From NCBI RefSeq assembly GCF_006345805.1, contig NC_043021.1:25730001-25794000 (forward strand): a DNA stretch of 64,000 bases, given 5' to 3'. This stretch comes from Octopus sinensis. Taxonomy: Eukaryota. Below are positions 4,875-46,808 of the stretch, piece by piece. Below the pieces are notes generated by a model, which saw only the letters and a list, made by a program, of their open reading frames with translations, made no database searches and was not told the DNA's origin. The first letter of the stretch is position 1, and each line of letters opens with the position of its first letter. Position numbers and translations under genes: made by a program.

Positions 4875-4893
4875 ATGGGTTTAAAAAGAAAAG
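4875..4893 (+). CDS. Putative first coding mini-exon (MGLKRK|D) of the L27-like/ankyrin gene
   Basis: ATG GGT TTA AAA AGA AAA G|GTGAGC gives 19 nt and a strong phase-1 donor, with an in-frame TAA at 4866-4868 upstream. The phase matches the acceptor at 16635/16636, and the length and phase match the recalled DLG1 first coding exon MPVRKQ|D. Confidence 0.6.
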
Positions 4894-5354
4894 GTGAGCC
4901 TCTTCCAGTATATTATCTTCTAATTTAAACTTTGATTCATTTAGAAACTTTCAATTAAGGTTCATGGTAAACAGTGTAGTTAAGTTATATATACACATAT
5001 ATGTGATCTGTGTGTGTGTGTATGTATGTATGTATTCACACACACAGATGTATAAATGCACACATGTATATACACACATATATATAGGCAAATTTATATA
5101 TGTATATTCATGTATGCATACATATATATGCACACACATTTACATGTATAGATATATATGCCTATATATATATACAAATATACACACACACACACATATA
5201 TATATATGTGTACATACACACATATATATATATGTGTGTAAATACACACATATATATATATGTGTGTAAATACACACACACAGATATATACCTGCATATA
5301 AATGTATACCTATGTATATAAACATATCTATAAATATAAGCAAATATACCCCAC

Positions 5355-5399
<45 letters not shown>

Positions 5400-5637
5400 A
5401 TGTGCATAAGGAGAAAAACACGGACCTCTGGCCTGTCAGGTCTTGCTTAATTTTCCAAACTTTGCCTGCATTAAATGATGATATTAATTGTATATGTGTG
5501 TATGTATGTGTGCATATATGTATATATATATATATATGTGTTTGTGTCTGTATATGTATATACATATATTACATGTATATATAGATAAATATAAATGTGT
5601 GTGTATGTGTATATATATGTGTATATACATATGTGTG

Positions 5638-5672
<35 letters not shown>

Positions 5673-5679
5673 CTCTCAT

Positions 5680-5759
<80 letters not shown>

Positions 5760-5860
5760 CTACAGAGGCCATGTGCCAACAGATTTTGAGGTCTGATGAT
5801 ACGCTGTAAAGCTAACCGCTTTATGGACATGAAACCCAGTGTAATCCCATTGACCAGCCT

Positions 5861-5957
<97 letters not shown>

Positions 5958-6380
5958 ATGTAAATAGCAGGTGTGAAATCGTAGTTGTGGCCATTGCTGG
6001 TGTCAGGTGCTAGTGGCACATAAAAAGCACCCATTACGCTTTCGAAGTGGTTGGTATTAGGAAGGGCATGCCAAACCAGACTGGAACCTTGTGCAGCCCT
6101 CCAGCTTACCAGTTGCAGTAAAACCACCTAACCCATGCCAACATGGAAAGTGGATGTTAAATGATGATGATGATGATGATGAAAAATTATTTTTTGTGAC
6201 TTCATAGTTTCATCTGGCAAAGCCATCTCTGGACTGTCTGATGATCAGCTGGCTGAAACTTTGAAGTTACTGTCAATACTATTCTTGTCAAAGAAGACTA
6301 AATTTGTTCTCTACCAAAATTTATTGTGTAATCTTTCAGTTTAATGTAAAATCCTTTTTATTATAGCATAAAAACAAACA

Positions 6381-6421
<41 letters not shown>

Positions 6422-6612
6422 TATATATAATGAATTGACCCCAGCACTCATTTTCATTTTGAGTTTGGTACTTACTCTATCAGTCTCTTTTGCTGAACCA
6501 CTATGTTAAGGGGACATATACACACCAACACCAGTTGTCAAGCAGTGGGAAGGGACAAACACAGGCATACACACATACACGTATATATATGTGTGTGTGT
6601 GTGTGTGTGTCT

Positions 6613-6704
<92 letters not shown>

Positions 6705-7258
6705 CTACAGAGGCCATGTGCCAACAGATTTTGAGGTCTGATGATACGCTGTAAAGCTAACCGCTTTATGGACATGAAACCCAGTGTAATCCCATTGACC
6801 AGCCTTATCTATTTATATATATATATATATATGTCATGTAAATAGCAGGTGTGAAATCGTAGTTGTGGCCATTGCTGGTGTCAGGTGCTGCTGGCACATA
6901 AAAAGCACCCATTACGCTTTCGAGGTGGTTGGTATTAGGAAGGGCATGCCAAACCAGACTGGAACCTTGTGCAGCCCTCCAGCTTACCAGTTGCAGTAAA
7001 ACCACCTAACCCATGCCAACATGGAAAGTGGATGTTAAATGATGATGATGATGATGATGAAAAATTATTCTTTGTGACTTCATAGTTTCCTCTGGCAAAG
7101 CCATCTCTGGACTGTCTGATGATCAGCTGGCTGAAACTTTGAAGTTACTGTCAATACTATTCTTGTCAAAGAAGACTAAATTTGTTCTCTACCAAAATTT
7201 ATTGTGTAATCTTTCAGTTTAATGTAAAATCCTTTTTATTATAGCATAAAAACAAACA

Positions 7259-7298
<40 letters not shown>

Positions 7299-7474
7299 GA
7301 ATTGACCCCAGCACTCATTTTCATTTTGAGTTTGGTACTTACTCTATCAGTCTCTTTTGCTGAACCACTATGTTAAGGGGACATATACACACCAACACCA
7401 GTTGTCAAGCAGTGGGAAGGGACAAACACAGGCATACACACATACACGTATATATATGTGTGTGTGTGTGTGTG
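5673..7474 (+). repeat. Head-to-tail tandem duplication (copy 1 5673-6610, copy 2 6611-7474)
   Basis: The unique sequence is near-identical, with about 5 substitutions seen. The length difference comes from (TA)n/(CT)n tracts, and the junctions fall in (GT)n runs. Confidence 0.9.
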
Positions 7475-7689
7475 CATATGATGGGCCTCTTTCAGCTTCT
7501 GTCTACCAACTAAACTCACAAGGTTTTAGTCAGTCTGAGGGAATAGTGGAAGGCACTTACTCAATGTGCCATACAATGGGACTGAACCCAAAACCTCATG
7601 GTTGGGAGGCAAACTACTTACCACATAGCCATCCCTATACCTGTTCTTACCACACAGCCATACATGATATAAATATATATATACATATG

Positions 7690-8215
7690 TGAAAGACATA
7701 GTACAAGATGCTAAGAGAAAAACTAAGAGAAACCAAATGTAGTGTGCAAGAAAGAAGACTGCTCTGGTACGGTTGCATGATGTGTATGAAGGCGGCGAGC
7801 TGACAGAAGCGTTAGCACGCCGGGCGAAATGCCTAGCGGTATTTCGTCTGTTGTTACGTTGTGAGTTCAAATTCCGCCGAGGTCGACTTTGCCTTTCATC
7901 CTTTCGGGGTCGATAAATTAAGTACCAGTTACGCACTGGGGTCAATGTAATCGACTTAATACCTATGTCTGTCGTTGTTTGTCCCCTCTATGTTTAGCCC
8001 CTTGTGGGTAATAAAGAAATAGGTTGCATGATGTGTATGGATGAAGACAGCTGTATAAAGAAGAGCCAGTCACAGAATGTGGATGGAACTTGCAGAAGAG
8101 GAAGACTCAGGAAGATATAGAACAAAGTGCTGAAGGCTGGTATCAGGACCTTGAATCTCACAGAGAAGATGACATAGGACTGATATGACTAGCAATAAGT
8201 GGTTCTAAAGAAAGC
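7690..8215 (+). mobile_element. Decayed RTE-clade LINE 3' fragment interrupted by a SINE
   Basis: After removing the SINE and one TSD it reads RRLLWYGCMMCMDEDSCIKK...VDGTCRRGRLRKI, resembling the RTE C-terminal RWYGHV.RM...G.R.RGRP motif. Confidence 0.6.
7791..8021 (+). mobile_element. Young tRNA-derived SINE (family B, GGCGGCGAGCT head)
   Basis: B-box GAGTTCAAATTCC. 18-bp TSD GGTTGCATGATGTGTATG at 7771-7788 and 8022-8039. Highly similar to the copy at 56820-57050. Confidence 0.85.
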
Positions 8216-8989
8216 ACATTCATCTCAGCAAAATTGGGTTCTGGTAGTGCTGTGTGTGTGTGTGTGCATGCATATATAAATATTCAGGGGGGGGGGGCTG
8301 AAAAGCTCCTGGCTTTGGGTAAAAGGAAATAGAGGAGGATCAGTTAATTATTATTTTATTTAGACCTCACTGAGAGAATGACAAGGAACAAGGAGATGTG
8401 GTGATTTGCTGTACTTGATGAGATGCCTCAAGCTAAGTAAAATTGCTGTCTTCCACACAGTTCTAGGTAAATTCCACCATAGTAAATTCCACCCGCTAAT
8501 AATCACTTTGGTCAGTTTCTCTAGACCATGGCTCAATACCTATGTTATTTAATCTGTCTGTCTCTCAAGTCTTAAGAAGAGAGAGAGAGAGAGAGAGAGA
8601 GAGGGAGTCTGAAATTGAGATAGAAAATAATCTTCATAATCTACTTCAGTTGAGATGGGATCACTTTAATGTCCTCCCATTGAGCAAGAATCTATGAAAA
8701 AGACTCATCACAAAATTTCAAAAATTATATAATTTGGGATAAAGAAAGAAAAGATTAAATTTTAGCACACATTTTATTATAACAATAGGATAAAAAATAA
8801 CAGCGAGTACATTGTGAAGCAGAGTTAGGATAAGAAAGTTTAGCTTATTTAAAAAAACTTCCTAAGACAAATTGTGTGCAATACTTCTTAAAATTTGCTA
8901 TGGACACATAAGAGGCACAATGGAATAATAGGGAAGTTATCAGAAAAAGTAGTGTTTGTATGTTGTGTTTTCTCAAATACTCTAGAGGC

Positions 8990-9112
8990 CCTTTAGAGGT
9001 AGTGAACAATTTCTGCTACCTAGGGGACCTGCTTAGCAAATGAGGTGGATGCACAGAAAGTATGATTGTTAGAGTAAGAATAGGATGGAGAAAATTCAGA
9101 GAGCTTTCACTT
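8990..9112 (+). mobile_element. RTE-type LINE fragment
   Basis: Reads VVNNFCYLGDLLSK*GGCTESMIVRVRIGWRKFREL, matching the RTE post-RT motif F.YLG...I..RI..AW..F. Confidence 0.6.
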
Positions 9113-9114
9113 CT

Positions 9115-9815
9115 CATAGACAAAGAAATAAGAAACCACAGTATGGTAGAAGTGATAGCCACTCATAATAAAAAGGAGTACTGGTGGAATGTACCAGTGA
9201 AGACCTCAATAAAATGTAAGCACAATAGTCTTGATATAATGTGTACAGTTGTGAAAATTAGCTGCCCAGCGGATGTTAACTTAAAGCTAAAGATTATTGA
9301 AAAAGCGAATACCTATGCTGAACTATTGAGAAATCTGCAGTTACTCCTTCCAGATTACAAATTCAGGTTTATACCTGTAGTTATTGGGGCCCTGGGATAT
9401 GTAACACACAGCCTAAATACCAATCTTGAGAAATTAGGTTTTTGAAAACCAGAAAGTAGAAAGCTAATTCAGAGACTACAGATCCAATCTATCACTGGAA
9501 CTGTAAAAATCTGTAAAACTTTCCAGAAGTTTATCATCTAAATATATATGAGCAGGTCTAGGTATGCAGCTATATTATGAGAATACATACATAAAACAAA
9601 ACATACAAATCTGCACACATACATACATACATACATACATACATACATACATACATACATACATACATACATACATACAAACAAACAAACAAACAAACAA
9701 ACAAACAAACAAACAAAAATACCCTGTTGAAATTCCAATGAAGGAGCCTTGGATCTGGGTTAGAAACTGGCTCTTTCACTCTTGGCAAGAAATCTTGAAA
9801 TAAAGTTGAATAATG
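9115..9815 (+). mobile_element. 3' fragment of a restriction-like-endonuclease LINE (R4/Dong-like) with (TACA)n(CAAA)n in the 3' region
   Basis: KCKHNSLDI...VVKISCPADVN...EKANTYAEL...YKFRFIPVVIGALG...LEKLGF resembles the RPD-..-E..C RLE domain and the IPVVIGALG motif. Confidence 0.6.
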
Positions 9816-10091
9816 AGATACATACATATATCACAATAGTGTGTGTGCCAATGTGTATGTGTGTCTCTGTAAATATAAATTAGTAATAAGGATTCCTTAT
9901 GAATCAAAGTACATCAACATGTAGGATGCCAGAGCTCACAGTGAAATAAAACATTATAGACTTCTAGTGCAAGCAAGGTACCATAGATATGCAAGTACCA
10001 AATCCAATTTGTAACATCAATCTGACTCACCAGTGAATCCTTGGTATAGCATAAGTATAAGATAGTAAACATGAATGGCATTTTAAATCTA

Positions 10092-10226
10092 CAGCTGTTT
10101 TGGTAGAATTTATTTAATGAAGTCATAAAAAATTATGTCATAATATATAATCCACCATCATCAGATAAAATTTTAAACCGATAATCTTTTATAACTACAG
10201 TAAATAAAATTCTACCAAAACAGCTG
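10092..10226. mobile_element. Fold-back MITE (Tc1/mariner-type)
   Basis: Terminal inverted repeats CAGCTGTTTTGGTAGAATTT / AAATTCTACCAAAACAGCTG, extending imperfectly to about 45 bp. TA is present on the left flank only. Confidence 0.6.
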
Positions 10227-10999
10227 TCATAAATTTTATATATATTTATAATATAGTGGCATGCACGGCAATGTGATTAAGCAGTTCACTTCCTAACCAC
10301 ATGAGTGAATGAATTTGGTGGATAGAAACTATCTTTCAGTATGTGGGTGTGTGTGTGTGCGTCTGTGTGTGTGATAACATGTCTGGCAAAGGAAAAACAG
10401 ATAATGGTTGGCAACAGAAGGGCATTCAGCCATAGAGAATTTGCATCGATGAATTCTGTCTAATCCATGCAAGCATGGAAAAATGGACATTCAAATTGTG
10501 TTGATGATATACAAAGCTTACTTTCCCATTGATTTACTTGTTATAAATTCAGATTTGTTCTAACAGAATTTCTGAAAGTAAAAAAAATACAACCACTTGT
10601 ATTTCTGAAAAAACACTTTTTAAGTACATGTGCACGCATGCGCACACACACACATGCACACACACACATACACACACACACACACATACACAAAACTTAA
10701 AGAGCCTTGCAATTGAGAATCAATACACTTACAGTAATATTATCATAAGGTCACCACAAAGGATGTTTACTGCTCTGTGATGGAAGGTGATAGAATGAGA
10801 CTTACTACAGCTTCAGCATTCAGGAATTTATCCAGAGTTGTTCAACTCTTATGCACCATGTCTCTATATATAATTCATTGTGGAAAGTGAGCTGAATATG
10901 AACTCCTCTTGTTATTTTCAAGTTATATCCATGATTAGAAACATTATCTCTAAGTGCCAACTCTTTAACCTTATTCTTTGCAGCCAACCGAAATGGGAG

Positions 11000-12240
11000 T
11001 GGCTGGGCTGGAGCATCTAGATCCTCTTCTTGTCAGTTGTAACACACATGAATATTTTCACTAAAGTTGACTTCTTTATTGGTTAATTGGTCATTCTACA
11101 CTCCTCTGTAGCTCTTGTTTCAACACAGCATTGGCAGCTAATTAGACGAACCTTCTCAATGTGATTCTAGCAACCTAGCAACTCGACCAGTTGATTCTCT
11201 TCCTTTGAACTAGCTGTAAATATGCACTGGAATTCTTTTGGACTCTGAACATGATCATGAATCTCCTGCAGAACTACTATAAACAAGTTCAGAATGATGT
11301 TAACAATACATTTGTATATGATGGAGCTGTGGGCTCTTGAGATAGAGATTCCCAAGGAGTATCCTGTCTCACTACTCTCTTTGTGAGAGGAATGAATGTT
11401 TTGACTCAGTATGTTGCAGAGTGTACTCAAATCATTGTCATTTATGAAGAGAGTTATGGCACCATCAGTGAAAGCTCCCATGCATAATTTGACAATCCTG
11501 TCAAGCCAGAAAGAAGAGACTGATGGAGACTTGCAAAAGCTCAAAGAGTTGATTTTATGAATTCAGTTGAACTCCCTGGCATGGGAGAACAAAAATGTGT
11601 GCTCCAGGAAAGGGTGATAATGGGAAAGCAATTTCAGATAAATGGAGAAGATATCCAAAGGTATTTTGAATCAGTGGGTGAAGAATCTGAGACATTGGGA
11701 TAAGAGTTGATAAAAGGATTCAGGATCAAGTGAGTAGCTTAAGTAGATTGAAAGGGTATTGATTCACGGTAAAAGAGAACTGTTATGCTGTTAATCTGGA
11801 TTGCCACCAAGAATAGGCACTTGTAATTAAGAGTTGAATGCATACAGCTAATGATGGTGCACCCAGCCATAAGAAGAAGCTAGATGTGTCTAGAATATTG
11901 TCTGATGTAGTTTTGCTTGGTTGTTTAAGGAAACCGTAACAGTCATTTTACAGCAGTGGTGTAAGAATTTCATGCAGGCAAGATGCACCTGCCTATGACG
12001 ACAAAGATTGTCTGGAGATGCAATTGTTGCCAAGGTGAGGCTTCCAATTCGTTATGGACACAAGTGAAAGGGAGGAGAAGAGGCTACAAACAAAACTGTT
12101 ATACATGTGAACTGAAGGGAGATCTTGGATGTAGAGCAGACTGGCAGAAGAGGTGTTGGCTTTCTATCTATGGAGCAGTCGTTCAGCTGGGACTTCATAG
12201 TAAGCGGTGTCAAAGAAACAGAGAAGTGGTGCAGGGCCAC
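11000..12240 (-). mobile_element. Highly decayed non-LTR retrotransposon RT fragment (possibly L1/Tx1-like)
   Basis: The minus-strand RIVKLCMGAFTDGAITLFIND..LSTL segment resembles a degenerate (Y/F)ADD RT motif 5. The region has many stops and frameshifts, and the clade is uncertain. Confidence 0.35.
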
Positions 12241-13704
12241 AGTGGCACCACAACAGGGACTTCAGTATGCATGAATATCATGGAATGAAGTGAATCAGAA
12301 ATGTATCTTATGGAAGGATCTATATTCAGTGTTAATAGGATCAAACTGGTTTAAGATAATCTTGTCAACAACCCAATACCTCATAACCTCATGACCACAG
12401 AATATCTATTTATTTTTTTCTGACTTATATTGTAATTCATAAATAACAGTGTCATAGGTTATAGGTTTCCAGCAAGTTACTCCCAAGTTCACCATATTTC
12501 TGAAAGTGAGAGTAATAAGGGAGTGACTATAACCTGGTGCAGAACACATATCACAAGTAACTTCATTTGAAGAGCGCCATTTTTAGATTTTTCTTGTTTG
12601 TGTTTACATTTTTAGATTTACACACACATGCACACATGCACGCACACACACACACAGACACACACACACACACACACCCATACGGTTGTGAGGTAAACTT
12701 CTTAACCACCGAGTAATGTTTCTGCAGATATTTTCTCAATTCAGAAATATGGAAGAAAAGTCAATCTCATTATAATTTGGCCAAATAAAGGCAACATCAC
12801 CACCACCACCACCACCACCATCATCATTATCTTTTAACAGCGATCTTCCATATAGGCATAGTTTAGGCAGTTTGACAGGATCTGATTGTTCCAAGAACTA
12901 CATTGTGTTCCAGTGTCTGCTTTGGCATTGTTTTTATGGCTGGACGCCTTTCCTAACACCAACTTCTTTACAAGTGTACTGGGTACCGTTTTCATGGCAC
13001 CAGTGCAAATGGGGCCACCATGTAGCTTGCAAAAGTAAAGTCCGCTTGAACTGAGAGGGGCTATGGTAGTGAGTGTGGTAGCTTTATGATAAAAAAATGA
13101 GCGGTTAAAGTATGAAAGAAGGGGCCAGAACAGAACAGGTTTCATGGTGTAGGGGAGATACATGGCTACTCATGTTTCAGAAGAGTGACATGAAAAACTA
13201 AACCATAATATTTTTAGTTCTTTACCATTCATCAAAGTTGACCTCATGACATTTTCTAGTATATTAACTTAACTAATCAACCACTCTCTTCATTTATATA
13301 ACTATCAATATGAAAACAGTATTTGCTTTCATGTTAAATAAATATCACAAGTTCTGTGGAGTGTTTTTCAAACAAGTTTTCATCTTTTGACTTTGGGATG
13401 AATGAATGTTAGCATAGTAATTAAAGGAAACAAAACAAACGAGGAACAGAGAGAAAAGAAGGAATGGTTTGGGAGGTTTTCACAACAATTAAAATTAACT
13501 TTATGGTTCAACTCTTTCAAACAAATATGTAGATATGAATAGGAACAAAACCCTATTCAAGCCAGATAATAAACCATTAACAATAATAACCTGCTTTCAG
13601 AATATATTTTCATTTGAAGTTGAGGTGAGAGAATTCAATGAAAATGAATGTAAACAAGTTGTCATGTAGAGCAAGTGAACACCTCTTTTTCTCTTTCTCT
13701 TTTT

Positions 13705-13929
13705 CTCATTCTCTTTCATTACTCTTTACTCTTTTACTTGTTTCAGTCATTTGACTGTGGCCATGCTGGAGCACCGCCTTTAGTCGATCAAATCGACCCC
13801 AGAACTTATTCTTTGTAAGCCCAGTACTTATTCTATCGGTCTCTTTTGCCGAACCGCTAAGTGGCGGGGACGTAGACACACCAGCATCGGTTGTCAAGCA
13901 ATGCTAGGGGGACAAATACAGACACACAA

Positions 13930-13960
<31 letters not shown>

Positions 13961-14132
13961 CATATATACGACAGGCTTCTTTCAGTTTCCGTCTACCAAA
14001 TCCACTCACAAGGCATTGGTCGGCCCGGGGCTATAGCAGAAGACACTTGCCCAAGATGCCACGCAGTGGGACTGAACCCGCAACCATGTGGTTGGTTAGC
14101 AAGCTACTTACCACACAGCCACTCCTGCGCCT
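13705..14132 (-). mobile_element. Full-length tRNA-derived SINE (family A)
   Basis: The minus strand starts AGGCGCAGGAGTGGCTGTGTGGT (A-box) and has B-box GGTTCAGTCCC, an internal (TG)n and the tail GACTGAAACAAGTAAAAGAG. Many related copies occur in the window. Confidence 0.85.
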
Positions 14133-14357
14133 ATTAGCTTCTTTTTAAAAGAATAAATAGGTACCATTATCATTATTTTTTGTGTGTGTGTGTATGTTGA
14201 ATAATTATTAAATCAGAAGACCATGGGTGATGTTTCTGTAGATTTTTTTTCTTCTTCTTTCTCTCTTTTTGAAATGGTGGGGAGGCAATTTCCCATTGGT
14301 TTCTCCAGATAAAATTAGAATTTCTTCATTTTCTTTTCTGGCAGCTAAGTGAATTAA

Positions 14358-14569
14358 CTGTTTAGCATTTAGACTGGCCATATCCAACCTAAATATTCTA
14401 CCTGTTTTATATTCAGACTGGCCATATCCAACCTATCACACCTACCTACAATGTCATACTAAAAAGAAACAATCGCATCAAAATCTCAACACTACAAGAT
14501 AATAAATGAGAACATTTGACATGGGAGATAATGCATTATATTTGACAGAGTAGTCTGAATGTCAAAGGG
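14358..14569. mobile_element. piggyBac-like MITE
   Basis: TTAA at 14354-14357 and 14570-14573. Imperfect TIRs CTGTTTAGCATTTAGA / TCTGAATGTCAAAGGG. Confidence 0.55.
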
Positions 14570-16635
14570 TTAAAAACATATGCAGTTGGATCTTCTGCTC
14601 TGAAGGATAGAGAAAACACCCGCAGAAGATTTAAATACATCTCATATGACTTGGTAGTCTGATTCACCAAGCCATTTTCCCATAATTCTAAACAGTTTAA
14701 AAGTAAAGTACATAGCTCAACACTTTTCCTAATTTTATTCAGAACAATATTCATCACTTTATCAATCTGGTTATGTATCCATCTATTTGTACTGTTATCA
14801 TTCTGTATTTCCATCCATTTTTGCTGGTCACTATTCCAAGGAAGGTTATGGGAGTAGAGTCTGCAAGCACCTTCTCCATAGGATCCTACCTGAAGCATAC
14901 CATTATTAAACTTTCCTGTCGGATTCCTAAGAGTGACCCACTGAGACCATGGATATACTCCAGTCATCTCACTTTTGGTCTACCACTGGGCTCCCTGCCA
15001 GGTGGCTCAGCTTGAAGAATCTGTCTTGCAATCCTTTTATGAGGCATTCTAACTGCGTGCCCATAGTACCAGAGCTGTGACATCTATATTTGTTTATTTG
15101 AAATTTCTCATACCCCTCTGAGTTGTAAAATAAAAGAATCTTAAGTAGATTTTAGAGAGTTTGACCAAAGAAACCTTAAGTCTAGTCATATCTAAAAATA
15201 TTGGGTCTCACAAAAGTTGTCATTTAGACCAAAGTCAGTTTTGACTGAAGAATTCAGGCCATAGCCATCTTATTACTTATTTTCAGGAATTGTGTACATT
15301 GGACTATATTATTCAAGTCCTTTATTTAAATGGTACAGTGTGGTTTTAAGGAAGATTTAACTATTATTTCTAATAGAACAGGAGATCATATAGAGATAAT
15401 CTCACAAAATAGATGATGCATGATTGAAGAACATAAAGTAATAATGTATTGCAGATCCATCTCAAATTAACACTAAAATATGATTGTTAAATATAAGACA
15501 GTTTGTCATTGTTTTTGCATCTATTTCTCCATGTTGGAGGAAGGATTTTTTTTTTATCAAGTGTAATTTTTTTGGTGCAGTTTCTTTTAAATAGTTATAG
15601 GCATGGTTGTGTGGTTAAGAAGCTCTCTTTGCAAGCAAATGATTTCAAGTTTAGTCCCACTGTGCAGCACTTTGGACAAGTGCATTGGGCCAAACAATGC
15701 ATTGCGAGTGAATTTAATAGTTGGCAACTGTGTGTAAGCCCAGTGTAAATGTGTGTGTGTGTGTGTGTGTACTCCTCTTATTGCTAGAGAACAGGTGTTT
15801 AAGTACTAGACTTAAAGAAATAAGTACCGGGGGTCAACCTGTTCACCTTGAACCATTCAAGGCATTTGTTCCAGCAAGGCCACAGTCCAATGACTGAAAC
15901 AAATAGAAGATTAAAAAATATTGATGACAATGATCATCACCCTCATCTGTTTGTCTTCAGTTGAAATCAATAGTTTCTGTTATTCCTGAATCAAAGAAGC
16001 TTCAGTAATAAAAATTAGTTGCATTGATCCTTATTCAAAGATTACCATTATATCATAGCCATTTGCTGTGGACCTTGTAAATGAGGTACCTAGTGATTTT
16101 AGGGAAGAATACACAGCATTGGATTCCTGGTATTTTCTCCAGACCTATGTCACTGTAAGCTTATGAGACACTTGTGATGCTGAGCATCAGGGAAAATGCT
16201 TTCCAGTATTTCTTTTGACTCTTTATGCTCTGAGTTCAAAACTAGCTGTGGTAAACTTTACCTTTTATCCTCTCGGGGTTGACACAATAAAGTATCTGTT
16301 AAGTACTGGGAGTAATGTAATCAATGAAACCCGCTTGCTTCAAAATTACTGGCCTTGTACCTAAATTAGAAACCATTAATTTTGCAGCTTCTGTGGCTGA
16401 CAACAAAAATATATACAAATACAACTGTAGTCTGAGCTTGCAAAAATTAAGTGATTCAGTCATAGACATTAGGCTGGGGTCTATAAGGAAACATGTATCA
16501 TTGGTTCTTTGGCTAGGAATCTTTTGATTCAGGCATTTACAGTTCTTTAATCCATTTTATTCCAGCTTTTTTATTAAGAAATCTCAAAACTGTTAAAAAC
16601 AAGCTGTCATTTACCTTTTGTATTTTCCATTTTAG

Positions 16636-16992
16636 ATTTTGAGAAAGCTGCTTCATTTCTCAACGAGTTTCTATTAAAGCTTAGTGAAGATGTGGAATGT
16701 GCTGAGTTACGAGACTCTCTTACACTGGCACTGTTACATATGCAGAAATACTACCGCATCTTACAGTGTCGTAGCCAAGAAAAAAATGCATATCAAGCAA
16801 ATATGCTGCCTCTATCTGCAAGAAGTCTCAGTCCAATGACACCATTTATTGATGCCCCAGATAAGTTTTTATGGAAATGGACAAACTTGGAAAGTACAAA
16901 ACTCCGAAACTCTATGTCATATATACTACCAAATATTATTCAAGCCACAAAAGAAGGAGACATTGAGAAAATTCTAGAAATAGTTATGCAAG
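16636..16992 (+). CDS. Internal exon: L27-like helical domain, linker and start of the first ankyrin repeat
   Basis: Acceptor tattttccattttag|AT and donor CAA G|GTAATT. 357 nt, phase 1-1, no stop codons: DFEKAASFLNEFLLKLSEDVECAELRDSLTLALLHMQKYY...IIQATKEGDIEKILEIVMQ. The end is an ankyrin first helix-turn-helix. Confidence 0.8.
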
Positions 16993-17623: not shown

Positions 17624-20122
17624 TTAAATGAACAATAGGATTTGATTTTTATCCTGAAGTTATTTTCCCTTTACAGTATTAGTTACAAGTCAGATATGCA
17701 TGGATGCTTTGGTCTAAAAATATACCTGAAAAAAAACCTCATTATTTTTATGGAAAATATAAAAAGAAATACCTGTAAAATAATCAAATATCAAATGTTT
17801 GTTTTCTTTGACCACTCATAATAAGAAATATCTGTCAGAAAGTGATTAGCCATATTAAATTTTGAAGGAGATAGAATTGAAAGATTTTTCAAACTTTTCT
17901 TGAAGCTTTTTATTACCCTATTCCCAATGAAATACACAGCTTTTTAAATCAGTTGTCATTATTAAACTGGTGTTTAGAACATGAAATTTTGATAGAAGGT
18001 TTTAGCACAGATCACTTTAAAACAGGAAGTTTATATCATGGAACCAGGGGTGGTCACAAGGTGGATTGGTATCAAAAGAATTAATGTATTAACAACCCCA
18101 AAATAAAATAAAATTGCTAAAGAATCAAAACCATATCAGGAATTTTTCCACAGATACAGAGAAATGATTCTTAGCTTTATTTCAGCAACTATTTCTTTTA
18201 GTTGATTGATGTTTATTTGAATACATATAGCAAGTACATTTGTTTCGGGCTAAGTTTACAAAGCCATAGGTGCTGAATGTTACTACCTGCTGTGATAACC
18301 AGCCAGGCCTGGATTTTTAATATGATCAATGACAAAAAGAAACTAGTTTTTTAGTGAGCCTAAGAACTTCAAAGAAGTGATACTCAGCTTACATAACTGA
18401 AGAATCTCTTTGGAATTTAATGTTAGTTTTATTGAAGATAACATTCCCTGGAAATCTGGTATCTATGGGCACTAATAATAATGCACAATGCTTAGAGATG
18501 AAACAATATCTCTGCAGATGATTAAAACTCAACACATCTTCCTGTGTTAGTAATTCTGTACGCAACAAATCAAAATTAGGTTAAAATAAATTATCTTATT
18601 TGTGTTGTATCAACCTTTCTGACAAATAGCTAACACTTAGAGTAGTTGGCCTTAGAATCAGTGAATAAAAAAGTTCTTGCAACTAGGTTTGTAGAAATGT
18701 GTCATGCTGATTACAAAGGAAAATATAACAATTAAGATGTATAAAGAAAGAAATCTAAAGATATCTTTCAAAAGAATCAATGAAATTACTCACCGAATTT
18801 TGATCTTCTAAAGAAAAAGAAATTGGTATCTTTTGGGGAGTATTTTTTCTTTTAAGATTTAATTTGAACAAAACTGTAATGTAATTGCTCAACTCTAATG
18901 AAAATTGTAATTAAGAGTTAACGATCTCATTTTCCATTGGAATTATTCCAATGGAAAAGAAAATCGTCAATTGTTTCTAACACAGTTATAATTTCAAGGG
19001 TAAAATAAGAAAATGGAAATTTGTGCTGTTCGTGCCTTTTCTGGGCTTGGGTGGGAATATTTGCATTGTAAATGAAATGGTTCTAACAAGAACTGAAGCT
19101 GAGCTGCAAACTCATGTCAGTGATAATTTACTGCTTTGCCATAACCCTCAGTCATGGATACAATATCAAAAGTTAAATTCTTATATAGGTGTAAGATGTT
19201 TAAGCAAAAAGAAATTAGGGTGCTGTGATGTTCATGCCTTTCCAACAAGTGTGAGGAAGTAAGCAATTCTTATTGAGGAGTGAATATGATTTGGAGCACT
19301 GGTTGAAAGGTTTTAAGTTCAAATTACTACAAATTGATTGGAGAGTAAAAAGTGAATTTTTAAAAAATTGAAATAAATTTTTTTATATCACCTATCACTT
19401 AACACATGCACATAATTGCAATTTCGTGGAATATTCACACTTATTTACATGGCAGATATATGCAATTTAACTAAAGGTTGTTTTTTTTTTTGTTTATGGG
19501 AAAAATTGAAAAATAAGAGTGAATATTTATTTTATGAGTGCTGTGTATGAAGTCTATAAAATTCTGCATAAAGTATATAATTGGCTTTAAGTAATGATCG
19601 TATTCCAATTTCTTTCACTTTCCATACAGACACAACACAAGCTATGCTGTAAGATTTTTTGGATAAAGTTTTCAGAAATAACACAACAGGTTTCCCATTA
19701 ATTTCATGAAATACTCACAGGTCCTGCTAGTATTATTTAAATTCACTTACATAAATTAGTTTATGGCTTGTATTGGTTTTGAGAACATACAAGAATCACA
19801 GACATGTTATAGCCTTGAGTTGACATTAAAAGTCATCAAAACCAAGCAGATATTTTATCAGTTCAGTGAGATAAAATGAAACAAGCCTCAGGGCAGCAGA
19901 AAGCCATAACACTGTCATGAACTTTCCAGCTCATTCTATCAAACCTAAGTACAATAAGTACACACATATTAATACTCACACTCCGAGACATGCACACAGA
20001 CACACACACACACACACCTATATATATATATTCTTATATATACACACACACACACACATGTATATACTTACATATATACATATATATATATCATCATCGT
20101 TTAACGTCCACTTATATATATA

Positions 20123-20385
20123 CTGTTGTGTCTGGGGAGAGTCATTCTCTTTTAGTGCCTTATTATTTAACACACTCACTGGTAAAATTTCCACTTATTT
20201 CTTATTTTTATTTCCTAAAATTTTTGTTGCGTCTTGCAACCTTTTCAATAGTCTTGACTCTTTAGGTATGCTAAATAAATGTCAAGACTATTGAAAAGGC
20301 TGCAAGACGCAACAAAAATTTTAGGAAATAAAAATAAGAAATAAGTGGAAATTTTACCGGTCAGTGTGTTAAATAATAAGGCACT
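20123..20385. repeat. Long inverted repeat (arms 20123-20258 and 20281-20385, continuing at 23537-23567), probably a Penelope-like terminal repeat pair
   Basis: The arms are reverse complements with about 2-3 mismatches and a 22-nt spacer. The right arm is split by the CR1 insertion. Each arm holds a degenerate hammerhead-like motif TTGAAAA-GG(T/C)TGC-AAGAC-GCAAC-AAAAA. Confidence 0.8.
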
Positions 20386-23702: not shown

Positions 23703-23738
<36 letters not shown>

Positions 23739-23750
23739 TATATGTATATA

Positions 23751-29110: not shown

Positions 29111-29122
29111 TATATATGTCTG

Positions 29123-29153
<31 letters not shown>

Positions 29154-29520
29154 ATGTATGTGTGTGTGTGTGTGTACATATATATATGTATGTGTGTGTA
29201 TATATATGTATATATATATATATGTGTATATATTAGCAACTGAGGTAGTATTAATTAATACCAAGAGGTGATATTTCTTGCCACTTAAATGTGAATGTTT
29301 GTTAGAACAAGCACTGGTGTTATTATGATTAGCACATGAACTTATAGAAAATATATATATTAGCAACAGATGCAATATACCGAGAGGTAATATTTCTTCC
29401 CACCGGTACATGGATGTTCTGTTAGAACAAACTATACTGTGGTAGATACCATGAGAGAAACTCACATTTGGTGCAAATATATATACATATACATATACAT
29501 ATATATATTTACTCTCTCTC

Positions 29521-29917
29521 ATTTACTCATTTACTTGTTTCAGTCATTTGACTGTGGCCAAGCTGGAGCACCACCTTTAGTCGAGGAAATCGACCCCAGG
29601 ACTTATTCTTTGTAAGCCTAGTACTTATTCTATTGGTCTCTTTTACCGAACCGCTAAGTTACAGGGACGTAAACACACCAGCATCGGTTGTCAAGCGATG
29701 TTGGGGGAATAAACACAACACACAAACATACACATATATATATATACATATATACAACGGGTTTCTTTCAGTTTCCGTCTACCAAATCCACTCACAAAGC
29801 TTTGGACGGCCTGAGGCTATAGTAGAAGACACTTGCCCAAGGTGCCACGCAGTGGGACTGAACCTGGAACCATGTGGTTCGTAAGCAAGCTACTTACCAC
29901 ACAACCACTCCTATGTC
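29521..29917 (-). mobile_element. SINE family A copy
   Basis: Colinear with 13705-14132. Confidence 0.8.
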
Positions 29918-32130: not shown

Positions 32131-32461
32131 AGAACAATTATTGTTGAAAAAAAATGTATTATACATGTATGAACATCTGTATACAATTGCGTATGCAATA
32201 TATAAATACACTTTTTGTCTTTGTTCTTCTGTCTTGTGGTCATTTATCATTATCCTCCCAGTTCACCTTGTTCACAACCTGTCATTTTGCTATATATGTG
32301 TGTGTGTGTTTGTGCTTGTACTTATAGATATTATATATACATATATATCATGTAAATCATATATTATATATATATTGATAAATATAGATATAGATATTGT
32401 ATATATGTATGCATGTATACTATATATATGTATATATACATATTTATTATATATATATATA

Positions 32462-32854
32462 TTCTTTTATTCTTTTACTTGTTTCAATCATTTGACTATG
32501 GCCTTTAGTCGAGCAAATCAACTCCAGGACTTATTCTTTGTAAGCCTAGTACTTATACTATTGGTCACTTTGGCCGAACCGCTAAGTTAAGGGGACGTAA
32601 ACACACCAGCATCGGTTGTCAAGTGATGTTTTGGGGACAAACACAGATACACAATCATACACATACACACACACACACACACACATATATACGATGGGCT
32701 TCTTTCAGTTTCCATCTACCAAATCCACTCACAAGGCTGTGGTTGGCCCGTGGCTATAGTAAAAGACACTTGCCCAAGGTGCCATGCAGTGGGACTGAAC
32801 ACTGAACCATGTGGTTGGTAAGCAAGCTACTTACAACACAGCCACTCCTGTATG
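32462..32854 (-). mobile_element. SINE family A copy
   Basis: Colinear with 13705-14132. Followed by a ~390-bp compound (TG)/(TATG) microsatellite to about 33240. Confidence 0.8.
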
Positions 32855-35024
32855 TAATATGTGTGTGTATGTATACATATGTATGTATGTATGTGTGTGT
32901 ATGTATGTGTGTATGTGTGTATGTGTGTATGTATGTATGTATGTATGTATGTATGTGTGTGTATGTGTGTATGTATGTATATGTGTGTGTGTATGTGTGT
33001 ATGTGTGTATGTATGTATTTATGTATGTACGTGTGTGTATGTGTGTATGTGTGTGTATGTGTGTATGTGTGTGTGTATGTATGTATGTATGTATGTATGT
33101 ATGTAGGTATGTATGTAGGTATGTATGTATGTGTGTGTGTGTGTATGTGTGTATGTATGTATATGTGTGTGTGTATGTGTGTATGTGTGTATGTATGTAT
33201 GTATGTATGTATGTATGTATGTATGTATGTATGTATGTATATTTATCAGCAGATGCTGCTATAAATGTTTTCCTGATGAATTGTAACTCCAGATATTTCA
33301 CTTTAAATAACTCGGCAACCAGCAGTAAGAACCAATCAATCAAAGCCATTTCAATATGTGGAATATGTCTGCTATACTGCAGCTAATCTATTAAATCATT
33401 ACTTGGCTATCAAAATTTTAAAGATCAATATAAGATATGTTATTGAATTGAATTTCAAAACTGTACAGTTTTATTTTATTGATTAAGCTTCAATCAAGAT
33501 GAAAGAAATGACACGATACTAAATATGGTGATTTTTCATCAATAATTGAGTCTTTCTTTAGTGATTGCCAGAGGACATATGTAGGTGTGAAGGCCATTAG
33601 GTAGGTAAGGTGTTGGTTGGCAATCTGGGTCCATGTTTTGGTTCACTATGTAATTACATGGAATGGATCAGTGCTATATTCTTCTTATTTCACAATAATT
33701 TTAAAAGCTGCCTCTTCATTAGTTTTTCAAATTGATGATGAAAGCTATAGTGAATAACACATTTGCATTTACAATCTTCCCTCCTCCTCTTCCTCCTCCT
33801 CCTATTCCTCCTCCTCCTCCTCCATCCCCATCCCCACCTCCTCCTCCTCCATCCCCATCCCCACCTCCTCCTCCACCCTTCTCTCCCCACCCCCTCTTTC
33901 TCAGCTAAATATTACATAACATTAAAAAAATCAATCAGGTTTTGCCATATTACAAATTCTGTTTTTAGATGATTGTGTTAATTTTTTTTTTTACTTTGGT
34001 TTAATCCAAATGACATTAGTAAATACGAAACATTTAATTTCCCCTTGATAATTACAAGAAGATAATTAGAATTATCAATGAAACAAACTGATGAGACTGA
34101 GCTTGTCTTACATTTAAATGAAATCATTTACAGACAAATAAATAGGCAGAAATCTGATCATGTTTATGGCAGTAATTTTAGTCCTTTTGTTACATTCTTT
34201 TCAACCCCAAGATCCCCAAGACGAGTCTGTTACTAACAAAGAGAAAGAATAGTACTTGAGTAAGAATAGATGGTCATCATGGAATATTTTCTAATTGCAA
34301 AAGTAAGATGATGGTCAGGAGTTTATAAAATGTTTCGATAAGTCTACCAGAAAGATAGCAAAAACTTGAAAGAAAACTGCAAGCAGAAAGCTTGAGGCAG
34401 CCATCGGGAAATAATGATTAGTTGATTTGACTAATTTTGTCATCATTGTCGTTGCTGTTGTTACTGTTGTCATCTTCATCATTATCATCACCATCATATA
34501 GGCACAGGCATGGCTGTGTAGTAAGAAGCTTACTTCTCAACCACATGGTTCTAGGTTCAGTTCCAATGCATGGCACCTTGGGCAAGTGTCTTATAGTCTT
34601 GTGCTGACCAAAGCCTTGTGAGTAGACTTGGTATGCAGAAACTGAAAAGAAGCCTATTGTGTGTGCGTGCGTGTGTGTGTGTGTTTCCTAAAATGGTTAA
34701 GAGGGATATATATAATCCTAGCAGATACCATGTTCACTCTTATCAATTAATGTAAGTAAACTCCAGTTAGTTAAAACTACTATACTCAGTTAATCCTCAC
34801 TTTGGTAAATCCAGATGTCTTTATAAAGACTGCATATTGTCGGTAGAGAAGAAATAATAAATGTGTAAATCTCTATTCTCCTGATCTTTATTAATGTGTG
34901 TGTGTGTGTGTGTGTGTGTGTTTGTCCCCTACCACCACTTGATAACCAGTGTTGGTGTATTTATGTCCCTGTTACTTATGAGTTTAGCAAAAGAGAATAA
35001 GTACTAGGCTTAAAAAAGAAAATA

Positions 35025-42873: not shown

Positions 42874-42924
<51 letters not shown>

Positions 42925-42983
42925 CTGGACAGTACAACTGAATGTTTATTTCATTACAACTAAATCAGTTATATCTATATCCG

Positions 42984-43034
<51 letters not shown>

Positions 43035-43084
43035 GATCATGTGATTTGTATATGTATGTGTGTGTGTATACATATATATATATA

Positions 43085-43430
43085 TCATCATCATCGTTTA
43101 ACGTCCATTTTCCATGCTGTCATGGGTTGGACAGTTTGACTGAGGACTGGCAAGCCAGTAGGCTACACCAGGTTCCAGTCTGATCTGGCAAGGTTTCTAC
43201 AGTTGGATGTCCTTTCTAATGCCAACCACTCTGAGAGTGTAGTGGATGCTTTTTACATACCACCGGCACAGGAGCCAGTCGTGGGTCACTGGAATCAACC
43301 ATGCTTGGATGGTGCTTTTTATGTGCCCCTAACACAGGAGCCAGTTGGGGGTACTGGTATCAACCATGTTCAGATGGTGCTTTTTATGTGCCACCAGCAC
43401 AGGGTGTCAGTCAGGCGGAATGGGCATCAG
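43085..43430 (-). mobile_element. SINE family C ((GAT)n, RTE-like tail) with three internal ~60-bp tandem units
   Basis: The plus strand shows CATCATCATCGTTTAACGTCC...CCATGCT and a repeated GGATGGTGCTTTTTA(C/T)GTGCCACC..CAC. Related copies lie near 5960-6180, 6830-7060, 36800-36936, 46200-46410, 52640-52860, 54410-54630 and 61415-61710. Confidence 0.7.
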
Positions 43431-45000
43431 CCACAACTAGGATTTTGATTTTGATTTTACTTGACTCAATAGGTCTTCTCAAGTGCAGTTTATCACCTGA
43501 CAATTTAAGAGTACTTTTAAATGGGCTGGTTATGCAACACTGGTTATAGCCACAGCTGTGATATCATTTTACTTGCTAGGTCTTCTCAATCACAGCCTAT
43601 CTCCAAAGGTCTCCATTTATATACATATACATACACACACACATACACACACACCCACAATGTCAGAAACAATTGTTATTGTTATTTATATCTGAGGCAC
43701 AAGGCATGAAATTGGAGAAAAAGTGGGTAGTTAATATATCAAATCAACCCCAGTATGTGATGTAACTGACACTTTCTTTAACTGACAGTGTAAGGACAAA
43801 AGGTATTCTGGTTTGGTTTGTCCAGAGTGTCTAATGAAATACTTATCTTGGGATAATCCTTTATCCATCAATTACTACTGTAATGTGTTTGGATCAATAA
43901 ATGTTTTCCCATGGGTTTATTTATAATCAATTACCATGAAACTTACTTTTAAGACTGAAAACAACCCTGTCAAGTGGTTATTGCACTTTTTGATGACACC
44001 AAAACTTGGCTGTAAACTGCCAATTAGATCCAAGAAAAAAAAATACATATATGCACAAAGAAAGCATTCATGTAATTGTGGTAATGTATGCAACACAGAT
44101 GGCAGACATGCTTTTCAAGTAGAGTGAACAATAGGAAAATTATTCCTTACAACATTGTCAACAATCTTCAACATAAGTGCCTTTTATCAGCAGGGGTTAG
44201 CAAACATCATTGAACTGTTAAATTTGTTTAATGCAAACCTATTTCCCTTGAATGATAAAACATTAATACTTCCACAAAATGCAAAGCACTCATGATGTTT
44301 CTTACCTACCCTCTTTTAATGGTGATGTGCTTCCAGTGCTATACAGGAGTAGATTTGACACCTGCTTCACATCAATAAAACAGAGTCATGTCATAACCCC
44401 CTATGAATCTCTGATAAGAGGTCAGTGCCCTTTTAGGAAGGGCTTAGATGAAACATTGAAATATTCCTACGTACAAATACAATCATATTTGTCTGCTATA
44501 TTATAAAAATATTCTGAACAAAGCAATAACTTATATGTAATTACAGACAGGTACTGGTGACAAATTTCATTAACAGACACACCCACAGCAAAAAAAAGGG
44601 TGGGTTTGATTATTTCTAGTGTTTAAATACAATCATGCAAAATGTGGTTATTAAGAAAAATATTAAGGGTTACCTAACAAAAATATTGATTGGGCAAGAA
44701 AGAAAGAGAAACAAATCCAATCATTTTTTTTTCTTTCTTTTGTTTCATCGGTGGAATTATATCCTTCACTGTTACTTACTAATGCTGTAAGGAATTAGCT
44801 TAATATATTGGGTCACCTAAATAATGTGTTTTTTTTTAACTGCATCAACTAAAAGTCAGATAGTGATGGGATAAATTGCCTGCAACAAATTGCTGTAAAA
44901 GCAGGTAGTAATTTTACCTTGTCCTTATTCTTAATGCAAGTTTTGATGAATGCAGTTTGATTTTAACAGTTATTTTTTCAAAGCTACAGTGGAAATGACA

Positions 45001-45860
45001 AAGGAGCATATTTGGCATATTTTGTTTTATGAGTTCAATAAAAGCAACAACACAATGGAAAATGCAAGGAATATTTAATGCAGTATATGGAGATCGGACA
45101 ATATGTGTAAGCTAGTGTCAATGGTGATTCCAGAAATTCCAAGCTGGAAACTACAGCCTAGAAGATGAGCCTCATCTTGGAAGATCTGTAAAGCATGACG
45201 AGGGCATCCTACAAACCCTGGTGGAGCAAAATCCCATCGTAACTGTTGAGGAACTAACAGAGAAGCTTGGATTTGGTCATTCAACCATTCATCAACACCT
45301 GCATGCCATCAGAAAAGTCAGCAAATTGGGTCAGTGGGTTCCTCACAAACTTTCTGAGTCTAATTGCATGCAGAGTGAATATGTGCTCTTCTTTGCTGTT
45401 GCATCTCACAAATGAACCTTTTTGGCACTGAATAGTGACTGGTGACAAGAAATAGGTTCTCTATAAAAATGTCAAGCACTGAAGACAGTGAGTAGGGAAA
45501 AAGGAAACACCAGCACCCCAGGCTAAAGAAGGTCTTCACCCATGTAAGGTGTTGTTATCTATGTGGTGGGGTTTAAAAGGTTTAGTCCACTTTGAAATTT
45601 TTAACCCAAACCAAACAATAACAAAGGAGATCTAGTGTGGGGAGCTTGAGTGGCTTAAGTCAGCACTAGAAGAAAAATGACCATCTTTGGTTTCAAGACC
45701 AAAGCTGTTCTTCCATCAGGATAATGCTTGACCACATACAGTGAGGATGACATTCCAAACACTGGAGTAGTTTTGATTGGGAAACAATGCTCCACCCACC
45801 ATATTCGCCGGACATTGCCCCATCTGGTTATCATTTATTCTGCAGTCACGGAAAAATATG
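45001..45860 (+). pseudogene. Decayed mariner transposase (SETMAR/Hsmar1-like)
   Basis: Contains SKLGQWVPHKL, IVTGDKK, HQDNA and HPPYSPDIAPS motifs, with many stops and frameshifts. TIRs were not recognised. Confidence 0.85.
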
Positions 45861-46096
45861 AATTCTGATGATGATGATCCTTTCTACAAAAGGTAAAAGG
45901 CCTGAAATTTGGGGGAGGGGGATAGTCAATTACATCGACCCCAGTGTTTCACTGGTACTTATTTTATTGACCCCCAAAAGGGAGAAAGGTAAAGTTGACC
46001 TCGGCGGAATTTGAACTCAGAATGTGGTGACAGACAAAATACCACTAAGCATGCTAGCAATTTCGTGCTAACAATTTCGCCAGCTCACCACCTTTC

Positions 46097-46128
<32 letters not shown>

Positions 46129-46385
46129 TAACAACAACAACAACAACATACTTTATTAACTAATATATGAGTGCCTGTCATTTTTGACTAATGGATTTTT
46201 AGTGCTGGTGGCATGACAAAAAAGCAACCAATACACTCTGTAAAGTGGATGGTATTAAGAAAGGCAACTAGCCGTAAAAAAAAAAGGAAAAAAACCATGC
46301 TGAAGCTGACATTGGAGCTCAACATTGCCCCAGTTCCTGTCAAACTATCCAACCCTCAGTAGCTTGGAAAACAAACGTTTAGTGG

Positions 46386-46417
<32 letters not shown>

Positions 46418-46679
46418 GTTGTGGTGGTAAATATTGTCTTGAGTCAGCATGTCAACACTTTAGTTATATATCTCAGTTAGGTTTCAACTAACAACATTAA
46501 AGAGTTCAGGGTATGGTTTATTTTAGAAGTACTGTTTCATGGCTTTTTCTTTCTTTCTTTTTCTTTTCATACCCGCTTCTACTAATTACAAACTTATGTA
46601 GTATTTCATTCCTGACCACTGTTTAATTCTGGGTGTTCTGTTCTGTTACAATAACAGCTTAACCTTTTTGTATTTTTAG

Positions 46680-46808
46680 ATCCAACTTTAGTGAATGAAA
46701 CTGACTGTTTGGGCAGGACTCCATTGATGTATGCTATTCACTATAATCAGCTGGAAGCTTTGAAATGCCTTCTAGAAAAAAATGCTGATGTCAATATATC
46801 AGCTCATG
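46680..46808 (+). CDS. Internal ankyrin-repeat exon, ANKRD55/inversin-like
   Basis: Acceptor ttgtatttttag|AT and donor CAT G|GTAAGT. 129 nt, phase 1-1. Joined to 16992 it gives MQ-D-PTLVNETDCLGRTPLMYAIHYNQLEALKCLLEKNADVNISAH, a canonical GxTPL...LL..GADVN ankyrin repeat that resembles recalled ANKRD55 [20 protein letters not shown]. No later exon was found in the window. Confidence 0.85.

Follow-up and report, generated by a model that had tools for sequence, protein, structure and literature searches.

To our knowledge, L27 domains occur only as the assembly glue of the MAGUK, Lin-7 and PATJ polarity and synaptic scaffolds. Helices A and B of L27 structures form a four-helix core, and helix C serves as its cap. 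In DLG1/SAP97 the L27_1 domain (PF09058; PDB 1RSO, 3LRA, 4RP3) stands at the extreme N-terminus, begins with a six-residue basic first exon and is followed by PDZ, SH3 and GK modules. Among ankyrin proteins, inversin (NPHP2) has an N-terminal solenoid of 16 repeats, and ANKRD55, a human autoimmune-risk locus, has approximately 9-10 N-terminal repeats followed by a long disordered tail. The Xenopus and human ANKRD55 protein moves with intraflagellar transport complex IFT-B, and knocking it down in Xenopus impairs ciliogenesis (PMC5488662). Here we describe a 64,000-nucleotide stretch of the Octopus sinensis genome (assembly GCF_006345805.1, contig NC_043021.1, forward-strand positions 25,730,001 to 25,794,000; hereafter the window) which contains the start of the cephalopod-type orthologue of an ancient metazoan ankyrin-repeat family, namely its first three coding exons. 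The N-terminus of the encoded protein resembles the L27_1 module of DLG1 at the level of sequence profiles and shares the structure of its first exon.

All features of the gene lie on the plus strand (a slash marks each splice site). The first coding exon (4875-4893) is a mini-exon of 19 nt, ATGGGTTTAAAAAGAAAAG/gtgagc, which reads ATG GGT TTA AAA AGA AAA G/gtgagc with the donor AAG/GTGAGC, and encodes MGLKRK plus the first base of Asp7. An in-frame TAA at 4866-4868 lies 9 nt 5' of the ATG. Intron 1 (4894-16635; 11.7 kb, phase 1) divides the Asp7 codon as G/AT. Exon 2 (16636-16992; 357 nt, ttttag/AT...CAAG/gtaatt) opens with a helical hairpin at residues 7-56, the L27_1-like segment (16636-16784; DFEKAASFLNEFLLKLSEDVECAELRDSLTLALLHMQKYYRILQCRSQEK), continues through a linker motif at residues 71-88 with two Ser/Thr-Pro sites and an aromatic cluster (16827-16880; LSPMTPFIDAPDKFLWKW), and ends in the N-terminal capping helices of an ankyrin solenoid (16923-16992; ILPNIIQATKEGDIEKILEIVMQ). 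Intron 2 (16993-46679; 29.7 kb, phase 1) separates it from exon 3 (46680-46808; 129 nt, 43 codons, phase 1-1, ttttag/AT...CATG/gtaagt), which supplies the first complete ankyrin repeat (DPTLVNETDCLGRTPLMYAIHYNQLEALKCLLEKNADVNISAH). Intron 3 starts in phase 1 at 46809 and extends beyond the window end at 64000. Each of the three junctions falls in phase 1; once joined, the exons total 505 nt and encode 168 residues without a stop. Coordinates and translation agree with those proposed in the initial annotation of this locus, including the 19-nt first exon and the phase-1 intron after residue 6.

The gene is confirmed by its homologues. A search with the 168 residues retrieved 18 open reading frames (ORFs) of other assemblies that span exon 2, at 40-97% identity. 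The similarity of every aligned ORF begins at D-F-Q-K and ends just past ..I..G, and because it starts and stops at identical points, the borders of exon 2 are conserved. The homologue residue ahead of the D is S, T, P, L or V, in each case from a codon of the form NNa, so that only a phase-1 acceptor fits. Searching 1.84 billion representative proteins with an exon-2 profile yielded 101 matches (82 at E<=1e-10), approximately 20 of which are full-length annotated proteins of 675-1088 residues. These annotated full-length homologues are continuous through both junctions (...MQQ/DPATVDDIDGLGRT...VTAH/DGSTA...). Exon 3 was likewise matched by tblastn with six full-length homologues, and its counterpart lies 1.3-1.6 kb 3' of exon 2, with the same 43-codon borders, in two homologous loci that are both unannotated (L003 and L004).

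The mini-exon is supported in the same way. The pattern M.[IVL][KR][KRG][KR]+G/GT has a single site on either strand of the 64 kb, at 4875, and 300 shuffles of the 16.6 kb upstream contained no instance of it. In twenty homologues, annotated or derived from transcripts, the protein begins with M-x-[IVL]-K-[RKG]-[KR] followed by DFQK, a pattern to which MGLKRK conforms. Of four homologous loci, three (L002, L003 and L004) have a single mini-exon 5' of exon 2, encoding MTIKRK or MTIKRR and with an AAG/GTAAGT-type donor. The fourth and closest non-identical locus, L001, shows neither mini-exon nor exon 3 within 10 kb, probably owing to long introns. Members of the Hydractinia type (802-813 residues) read uninterrupted through MTIRKR-DFQK on Logan contigs of 2.5-5.9 kb; contigs so short must, we infer, be spliced transcripts. 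On these grounds we regard the junction 4893>16636 as established by homology. The comparison with other molluscs suggested in the initial annotation yielded homologues with a matching N-terminus, linker and junctions into the ankyrin repeats in, for example, Mizuhopecten, Patella and Gigantopelta.

Two homologue models are of interest with regard to gene prediction. The Sinanodonta woodiana model KAL3856149 (P0021) has an intron-derived start (MIIKLLTFVIFILFYPFLG/DFQK) and skips the exon-3 equivalent, and in a molluscan-type sequence of 988 residues (P0033) an unrelated N-terminal segment replaces M..KRK-DFQ. These annotation errors show that automated models can miss the mini-exon, as had been anticipated, although most homologue models include it.

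The octopus gene belongs to a widely conserved family. The locus had been proposed as a candidate chimeric scaffold gene; it is not a lineage-specific chimera, being a member of a pan-metazoan family already present in the databases as gene models, mostly with the mini-exon in place. Cluster look-ups identified members in Mollusca (Batillaria, Mizuhopecten, Patella, Gigantopelta, Sinanodonta), Nemertea (Lineus, Tubulanus), Annelida (Helobdella), Platyhelminthes (Macrostomum), Rotifera (Adineta), Echinodermata (Anneissia, Diadema, Asterias), Hemichordata (Saccoglossus), Cephalochordata (Branchiostoma), Cnidaria (Hydra, Hydractinia, Nematostella, Sanderia) and Ctenophora (Mnemiopsis). No vertebrate, arthropod or nematode was found among the approximately 30 taxon-identified of the 101 N-terminal profile matches. 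In the databases, members are called uncharacterized, or espin-like, Inversin, PPP1R12A, notch-like, ankycorbin-like, PP6 ankyrin subunit B or ANKRD55. Examples include Mizuhopecten yessoensis XP_021377640 ('espin-like') and A0A210PQK2 ('Inversin'), Gigantopelta aegis XP_041378911, Patella vulgata XP_055957600 ('PPP1R12A'), Lineus longissimus XP_064619725, Branchiostoma belcheri KAI8505099, Hydra vulgaris XP_065663395 and Mnemiopsis leidyi KAL5261501. The octopus gene is an orthologue of existing gene models; the novelty lies in recognising that these form one family, and in its L27_1-like start.

Members of this family (approximately 700-1100 residues) share an architecture that runs from the mini-exon start through a two-helix hairpin and a disordered linker to some 9-10 ankyrin repeats, and closes with a tail that is long, proline-rich and disordered; an ankyrin block ending in ..LHYC.LI..SHQRQR is part of the architecture by which full-length members are defined. 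The named members match the window protein in the N-terminus M-x-[IVL]-K-[RKG]-[KR]-DFQKAAAF...ECAELRD...LL.MQKYYR, in the LSPMTPF-DAPDKF-W-W linker and at the junctions leading to the first ankyrin repeat, with 43-68% identity across exon 2. Thirteen linker residues (L71, S72, P73, M74, T75, P76, F77, D79, A80, P81, D82, F84 and W88) are invariant in 18 sequences, and the linker motif as a whole, invariant in closer homologues, is recognisable family-wide. The window protein carries all the invariant family columns, the shared exon borders and the shared mini-exon. It differs from other members in residues G2-L3, where these have [AVT]-[IVL], and the octopus introns (11.7, 29.7 and >17 kb) are long compared with the 0.5-5 kb seen at other loci.

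Several further features were noted within the family. The tails of the family proteins, which lie outside the window, contain conserved islands (PITPPHPPKRPR, GMDVSD[IL][ED], KKKKKK, PRGYAAPLHPP and GPLIPPPQGFRG) that are candidate linear motifs, for example a nuclear localisation signal or ligands for SH3 or WW domains. One sequence of 308 residues (P0112) holds several copies of a repeated ..VEAEVRDSLDLSILHQVYSRWW.. unit and scores 43.7 bits against the family N-terminal hidden Markov model (HMM); it may be a tandemly amplified or pseudogenised helix-2 fragment. In some lineages (P0074-P0076, P0079, P0098, P0104, P0109 and P0114, of which P0104, P0109 and P0114 are cnidarian-like), exon 2 is split by an extra phase-0 intron, either after approximately residue 50 (..YYR.LQ/gt) or after approximately residue 56 (..KTK/gt).

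The ankyrin part of the protein was predicted correctly from the outset. In the window protein, Ank_2 (4.8e-8, residues 109-165), Ank (9.7e-8) and Ank_3 (2.9e-7) all pass the curated Pfam cut-offs; full-length homologues reach 5.8e-49 for Ank_2, and the end of exon 2 matches designed ankyrin repeats in the PDB when searched as a family profile. The window itself includes 1.3 repeats. A motif scan and tblastn with the six full-length homologues revealed no additional exons beyond exon 3; since the tblastn matches were limited to exons 2 and 3, intron 3 exceeds 17 kb and the remaining gene lies past 64000, where about eight further repeats and a tail would be expected by analogy with the homologues.

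AlphaFold2 (AF2) monomer models were obtained for exon 2 and, using a 16-sequence alignment, for residues 1-408 of the Gigantopelta protein. The former contains helices at exon-2 positions 2-16 and 20-55, with a predicted local distance difference test score (pLDDT) of approximately 80. The latter (pLDDT 85, predicted template modelling score 0.80) contains helices at 5-21 and 26-56 (pLDDT 71-90), disorder at 57-78 and 91-106 flanking the linker motif at 79-90 (pLDDT ~65), and an ankyrin solenoid from residue 107 (pLDDT >90), the block spanning approximately 300 residues. Foldseek searches with the 408-residue model returned generic ankyrin solenoids only.

We then come to the origin of the hairpin, which the initial annotation compared with the L27 domain of DLG1. 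The DLG1 sequence and gene structure given there are correct. The sequence is identical to PDB 3LRA and, as a positive control, scores 3.4e-31 against Pfam L27_1, while genomic ORFs bear out a six-residue first exon and a phase-1 split of Asp7. With this verified query, 42 L27_1 sequences were gathered and the 13 full ones, including fly Dlg, were aligned. In hhalign comparisons, a 20-sequence alignment of the ankyrin family matched L27_1 with a probability of 67% (P 5e-5, score 26.4), the tool's own run on 54 family sequences gave 91.3%, and 74 family sequences gave 93.2% (P 3e-7, score 35.9), with P for the 91-93% runs between 3e-7 and 1e-6. Reversed profiles scored 8.9-10.3 and 200 column shuffles averaged 10.3 (standard deviation 2.3, maximum 18.0); the score rises with family diversity against a null that is constant at approximately 10. 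The signal survived removal of the first six columns, falling to 57% (P 1e-4). Furthermore, a family HMM built without those six columns gives positive scores for all 43 L27_1 sequences (2.4-19 bits), and 12.1 bits for human DLG1. The profile alignment pairs Met1 with Met1 and brings together helix A, the loop and the LR motif, as well as ALIDIQEFY of DLG1 with the family block ALL.MQKYY.

Gene structure provides evidence of a different kind. In vertebrate DLG1 genomic ORFs, similarity starts at D[TA]QRAL after S, L, A, G or P, all from NNa codons, so that here too only a phase-1 acceptor fits. The DNA of one such ORF reads ttttcag/AT ACC CAG ... ATA G/gtggga, with exon 2 starting ttttcag/ATACCCAG; its counterpart in the window is AAAAG/gtgagc ... 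ttttag/ATTTTGAG. The window thus shares with DLG1 a 19-nt first coding exon (MPVRKQ plus G in DLG1) and an Asp7 codon split G/AT in phase 1, and this shared intron position and phase is evidence independent of the sequence score. The two genes diverge beyond this point: in DLG1 the second exon stops at residue 50, in phase 1, and the protein continues with the PDZ-SH3-GK modules, whereas exon 2 of the window runs to residue 125 and leads into ankyrin repeats. A second intron common to both, near residue 50, was considered and rejected; the family intron there is in phase 0 and offset by one codon relative to the phase-1 intron of DLG1, and for this reason it was not counted as evidence.

Several results weigh against a relationship with L27. 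Searched at E<=10, neither the window protein nor 20 family N-termini matched any of the Pfam families L27, L27_1, L27_2 and L27_N. Three family profiles run against 177,635 PDB sequences retrieved designed ankyrins and an amphipathic peptide, and never the SAP97/Dlg L27 chains that are present there; the best N-terminal match was this unrelated peptide of 22 residues, at E 0.2. A pairwise BLASTP comparison between DLG1 and the N-terminus of the window protein gave no match. Both AF2 models independently give two helices rather than the three of an L27 domain, and a Foldseek search of the PDB with the exon-2 model produced no match below E 2.6 and no L27. HMMER and hhalign both require an 11-residue gap that takes out most of helix B and the B-C turn, and the six basic N-terminal residues supply one third of the hhalign score. 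In the same hhalign test the unrelated 22-residue amphipathic peptide reaches 85% (P 6e-6), which implies that hhalign probabilities are inflated for short amphipathic helices, and the best chance match in the database is not far below the DLG1 score. Finally, DLG1 was selected for comparison after the resemblance had been noticed, and the hhalign P values are uncorrected for that choice. The resemblance to DLG1 L27 stands in part: it is non-random at the profile level and is accompanied by the same first exon, but it is not seen by Pfam, PDB, BLASTP or Foldseek searches.

One explanation of these observations, which leaves the gene and family as described, is that the hairpin is a helical element peculiar to this family and has no relation to L27, the similarity reflecting chance or convergence of amphipathic helices and the 19-nt exon being a coincidence. 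The empty HMM-to-sequence and BLASTP searches, the two-helix fold, the obligatory gap, the score of the unrelated peptide and the post hoc choice of DLG1 all favour this explanation. It does not readily account for a profile score that climbs from 26.4 to 35.9 with diversity, for positive scores in 43 of 43 L27_1 sequences with Met1 anchored to Met1, or for an identical intron position and phase at Asp7, and we regard it as a credible minority view. Set against the caveats above, the rise in profile score, the pairing of Met1 with Met1 and the identity of a rare exon structure make it reasonably probable, in our view, that the mini-exon and hairpin are of common origin with the L27_1 module of the DLG type. 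The profile resemblance and the 19-nt first exon are suggestive of this, and are not proof. If the two are homologous, the absence of 11 helix-B residues and the joining of helices B and C mean that the octopus hairpin is a remodelled module and no canonical three-helix L27. The 11-residue gap, which fuses the start of helix B to helix C, agrees with the single long second helix of the AF2 models. Among other Pfam families, TADA2A-like_3rd was a recurrent weak match (7 of 20 members, best E 0.011); it was discarded, as a verified TADA2A segment performed at null level (1.4%, -0.3 bits).

A separate question is whether the family represents the invertebrate counterpart of vertebrate ANKRD55, acting in intraflagellar transport, with the hairpin lost in vertebrates. 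This would be compatible with L27_1 ancestry, because it concerns function and not domain origin. Hydra members are named 'ankyrin repeat domain-containing protein 55' automatically by NCBI, and motile cilia are present in all ten phyla from which members were identified; nematodes, arthropods and vertebrates were absent from the approximately 30 matches identified by taxon. The family also resembles ANKRD55 in its order of approximately 9-10 repeats and long disordered tail. In an alignment with an unverified human ANKRD55 sequence, residues 101-417 of the family are colinear, in one stretch, with ANKRD55 residues 21-335 at approximately 29% identity and E ~1e-30, but bacterial ankyrin decoys give similar E-values. 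The human protein presumably lacks both the N-terminal hairpin and the LSPMTPF motif. Other members carry the automatic names espin-like, inversin, PPP1R12A, notch-like, ankycorbin-like and PP6 ankyrin subunit, and this inconsistency means that the names provide no consistent orthology call. A search for a named vertebrate orthologue with the ankyrin block of the amphioxus protein found only generic, mostly microbial, ankyrin proteins. We treat the ANKRD55 link as a lead and not a finding, and hold it only tentatively. Inversin, similarly, has an N-terminal ankyrin solenoid, and one scallop member is labelled 'Inversin' in UniProt. The family differs from inversin in its smaller number of repeats (approximately 9-10 versus 16), in the N-terminal hairpin that inversin lacks and in the absence of IQ motifs, since every Pfam match in two full-length members is to an Ank family. 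The label seems to have been assigned automatically from a best hit.

The most ambitious suggestion for the N-terminus is that it forms a functional L27 domain that would heterodimerise with a CASK/MPP-type L27N, either docking the ankyrin module onto MAGUK polarity or synaptic complexes or acting as a decoy. The hhalign similarity and gene structure described above can be cited for this suggestion too. The L27_1 domain of DLG1 has been solved together with the L27 domains of MPP7 and Lin-7 (PDB 3LRA), so this way of binding is known for the nearest relative. The alignment lacks most of helix B, however, and the predicted fold has two helices, not three. We judge this suggestion unlikely, and a canonical, CASK/MPP-binding L27 to be much less likely than L27_1 ancestry. 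The weakest alternative, that there is no functional gene and the exons are fortuitous ORFs or a fragment of a pseudogene, can appeal to the rest of the gene lying outside the window, but is already effectively refuted by exon sequences and borders conserved across phyla, intact frames, canonical splice sites and a conserved mini-exon.

Returning to L27_1 ancestry, we can propose how the gene might have arisen and how its product might act. The same 5' exon pair would have been placed on two different scaffolds early in animal evolution, with the copy found in the window remodelled through the loss of 11 helix-B residues and the fusion of helices B and C. The protein may function as an adaptor whose ankyrin groove binds a partner or cargo, while the N-terminal hairpin, by analogy with L27 hairpins, could mediate self- or hetero-association through helix bundling. 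The LSPMTPF-DAPDKF-W-W segment, with two Ser/Thr-Pro sites, three aromatics and disordered flanks, is a candidate regulated short motif, and its proline-directed Ser/Thr sites might control this association, possibly through fold-back onto the ankyrin groove. In its fullest form, the proposal would be of a pan-metazoan ankyrin scaffold with a working, remodelled DLG-type L27, shuffled in as a phase-1 5' exon pair at the base of the animals, which joins CASK/MPP/Lin-7 networks and so links MAGUK polarity complexes to ankyrin partners, possibly including IFT-B or ciliary cargo should the relation to ANKRD55 hold. We think it improbable that all of this applies.

Were the L27 relationship true, an L27-derived module on an ankyrin solenoid, distributed from ctenophores to amphioxus, would widen the L27 network and provide a clean case of ancient exon shuffling, in which two scaffolds that are not related to each other have the same 19-nt first exon and the same codon split in phase 1. 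A working L27 would be the first outside the MAGUK, Lin-7 and PATJ scaffolds. Consistent with the novelty claimed for an L27-ankyrin architecture in the initial annotation, none of the literature found to mention both an L27 domain and ankyrin repeats places the two in one protein, as judged by title and abstract. If the similarity is due to chance, an ordinary orthologue of an unstudied ankyrin gene remains. Independently of L27, our analysis defines a large, conserved and uncharacterised animal family, distinguished by its N-terminus and by an invariant linker motif in which likely phosphorylation sites abound, whose members currently stand under six different misleading automatic names and which may be linked to ciliary ANKRD55.

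The window as a whole has a G+C content of 36.9%. Rfam and tRNA scans of the window returned nothing. At one homologous locus (L002, 2135-3307, minus strand), fragments of a PP1-type Ser/Thr phosphatase (Metallophos, STPPase_N) lie head-to-head with the gene, approximately 2-3 kb upstream of the mini-exon; the first 4.8 kb of the octopus window contain no comparable ORF. Intron 2 holds a decayed non-long-terminal-repeat retrotransposon of the long interspersed nuclear element type at approximately 20520-23412 (plus strand, sense), the parts of which are spread over different frames: an Exo_endo_phos fragment (E 0.0017), a 588-residue reverse transcriptase ORF (RVT_1, E 4.7e-33) and a 201-residue C-terminal ORF. 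Low-complexity stretches at approximately 5140-5565, 19917-20294, 23475-23915, 29106-29522 and 32141-33386 consist of (TA)n and (TG/CA)n microsatellite-like sequence and yield spurious ORFs with a high content of Y, I, H, T, C, V and M, as is typical of intronic repeats.

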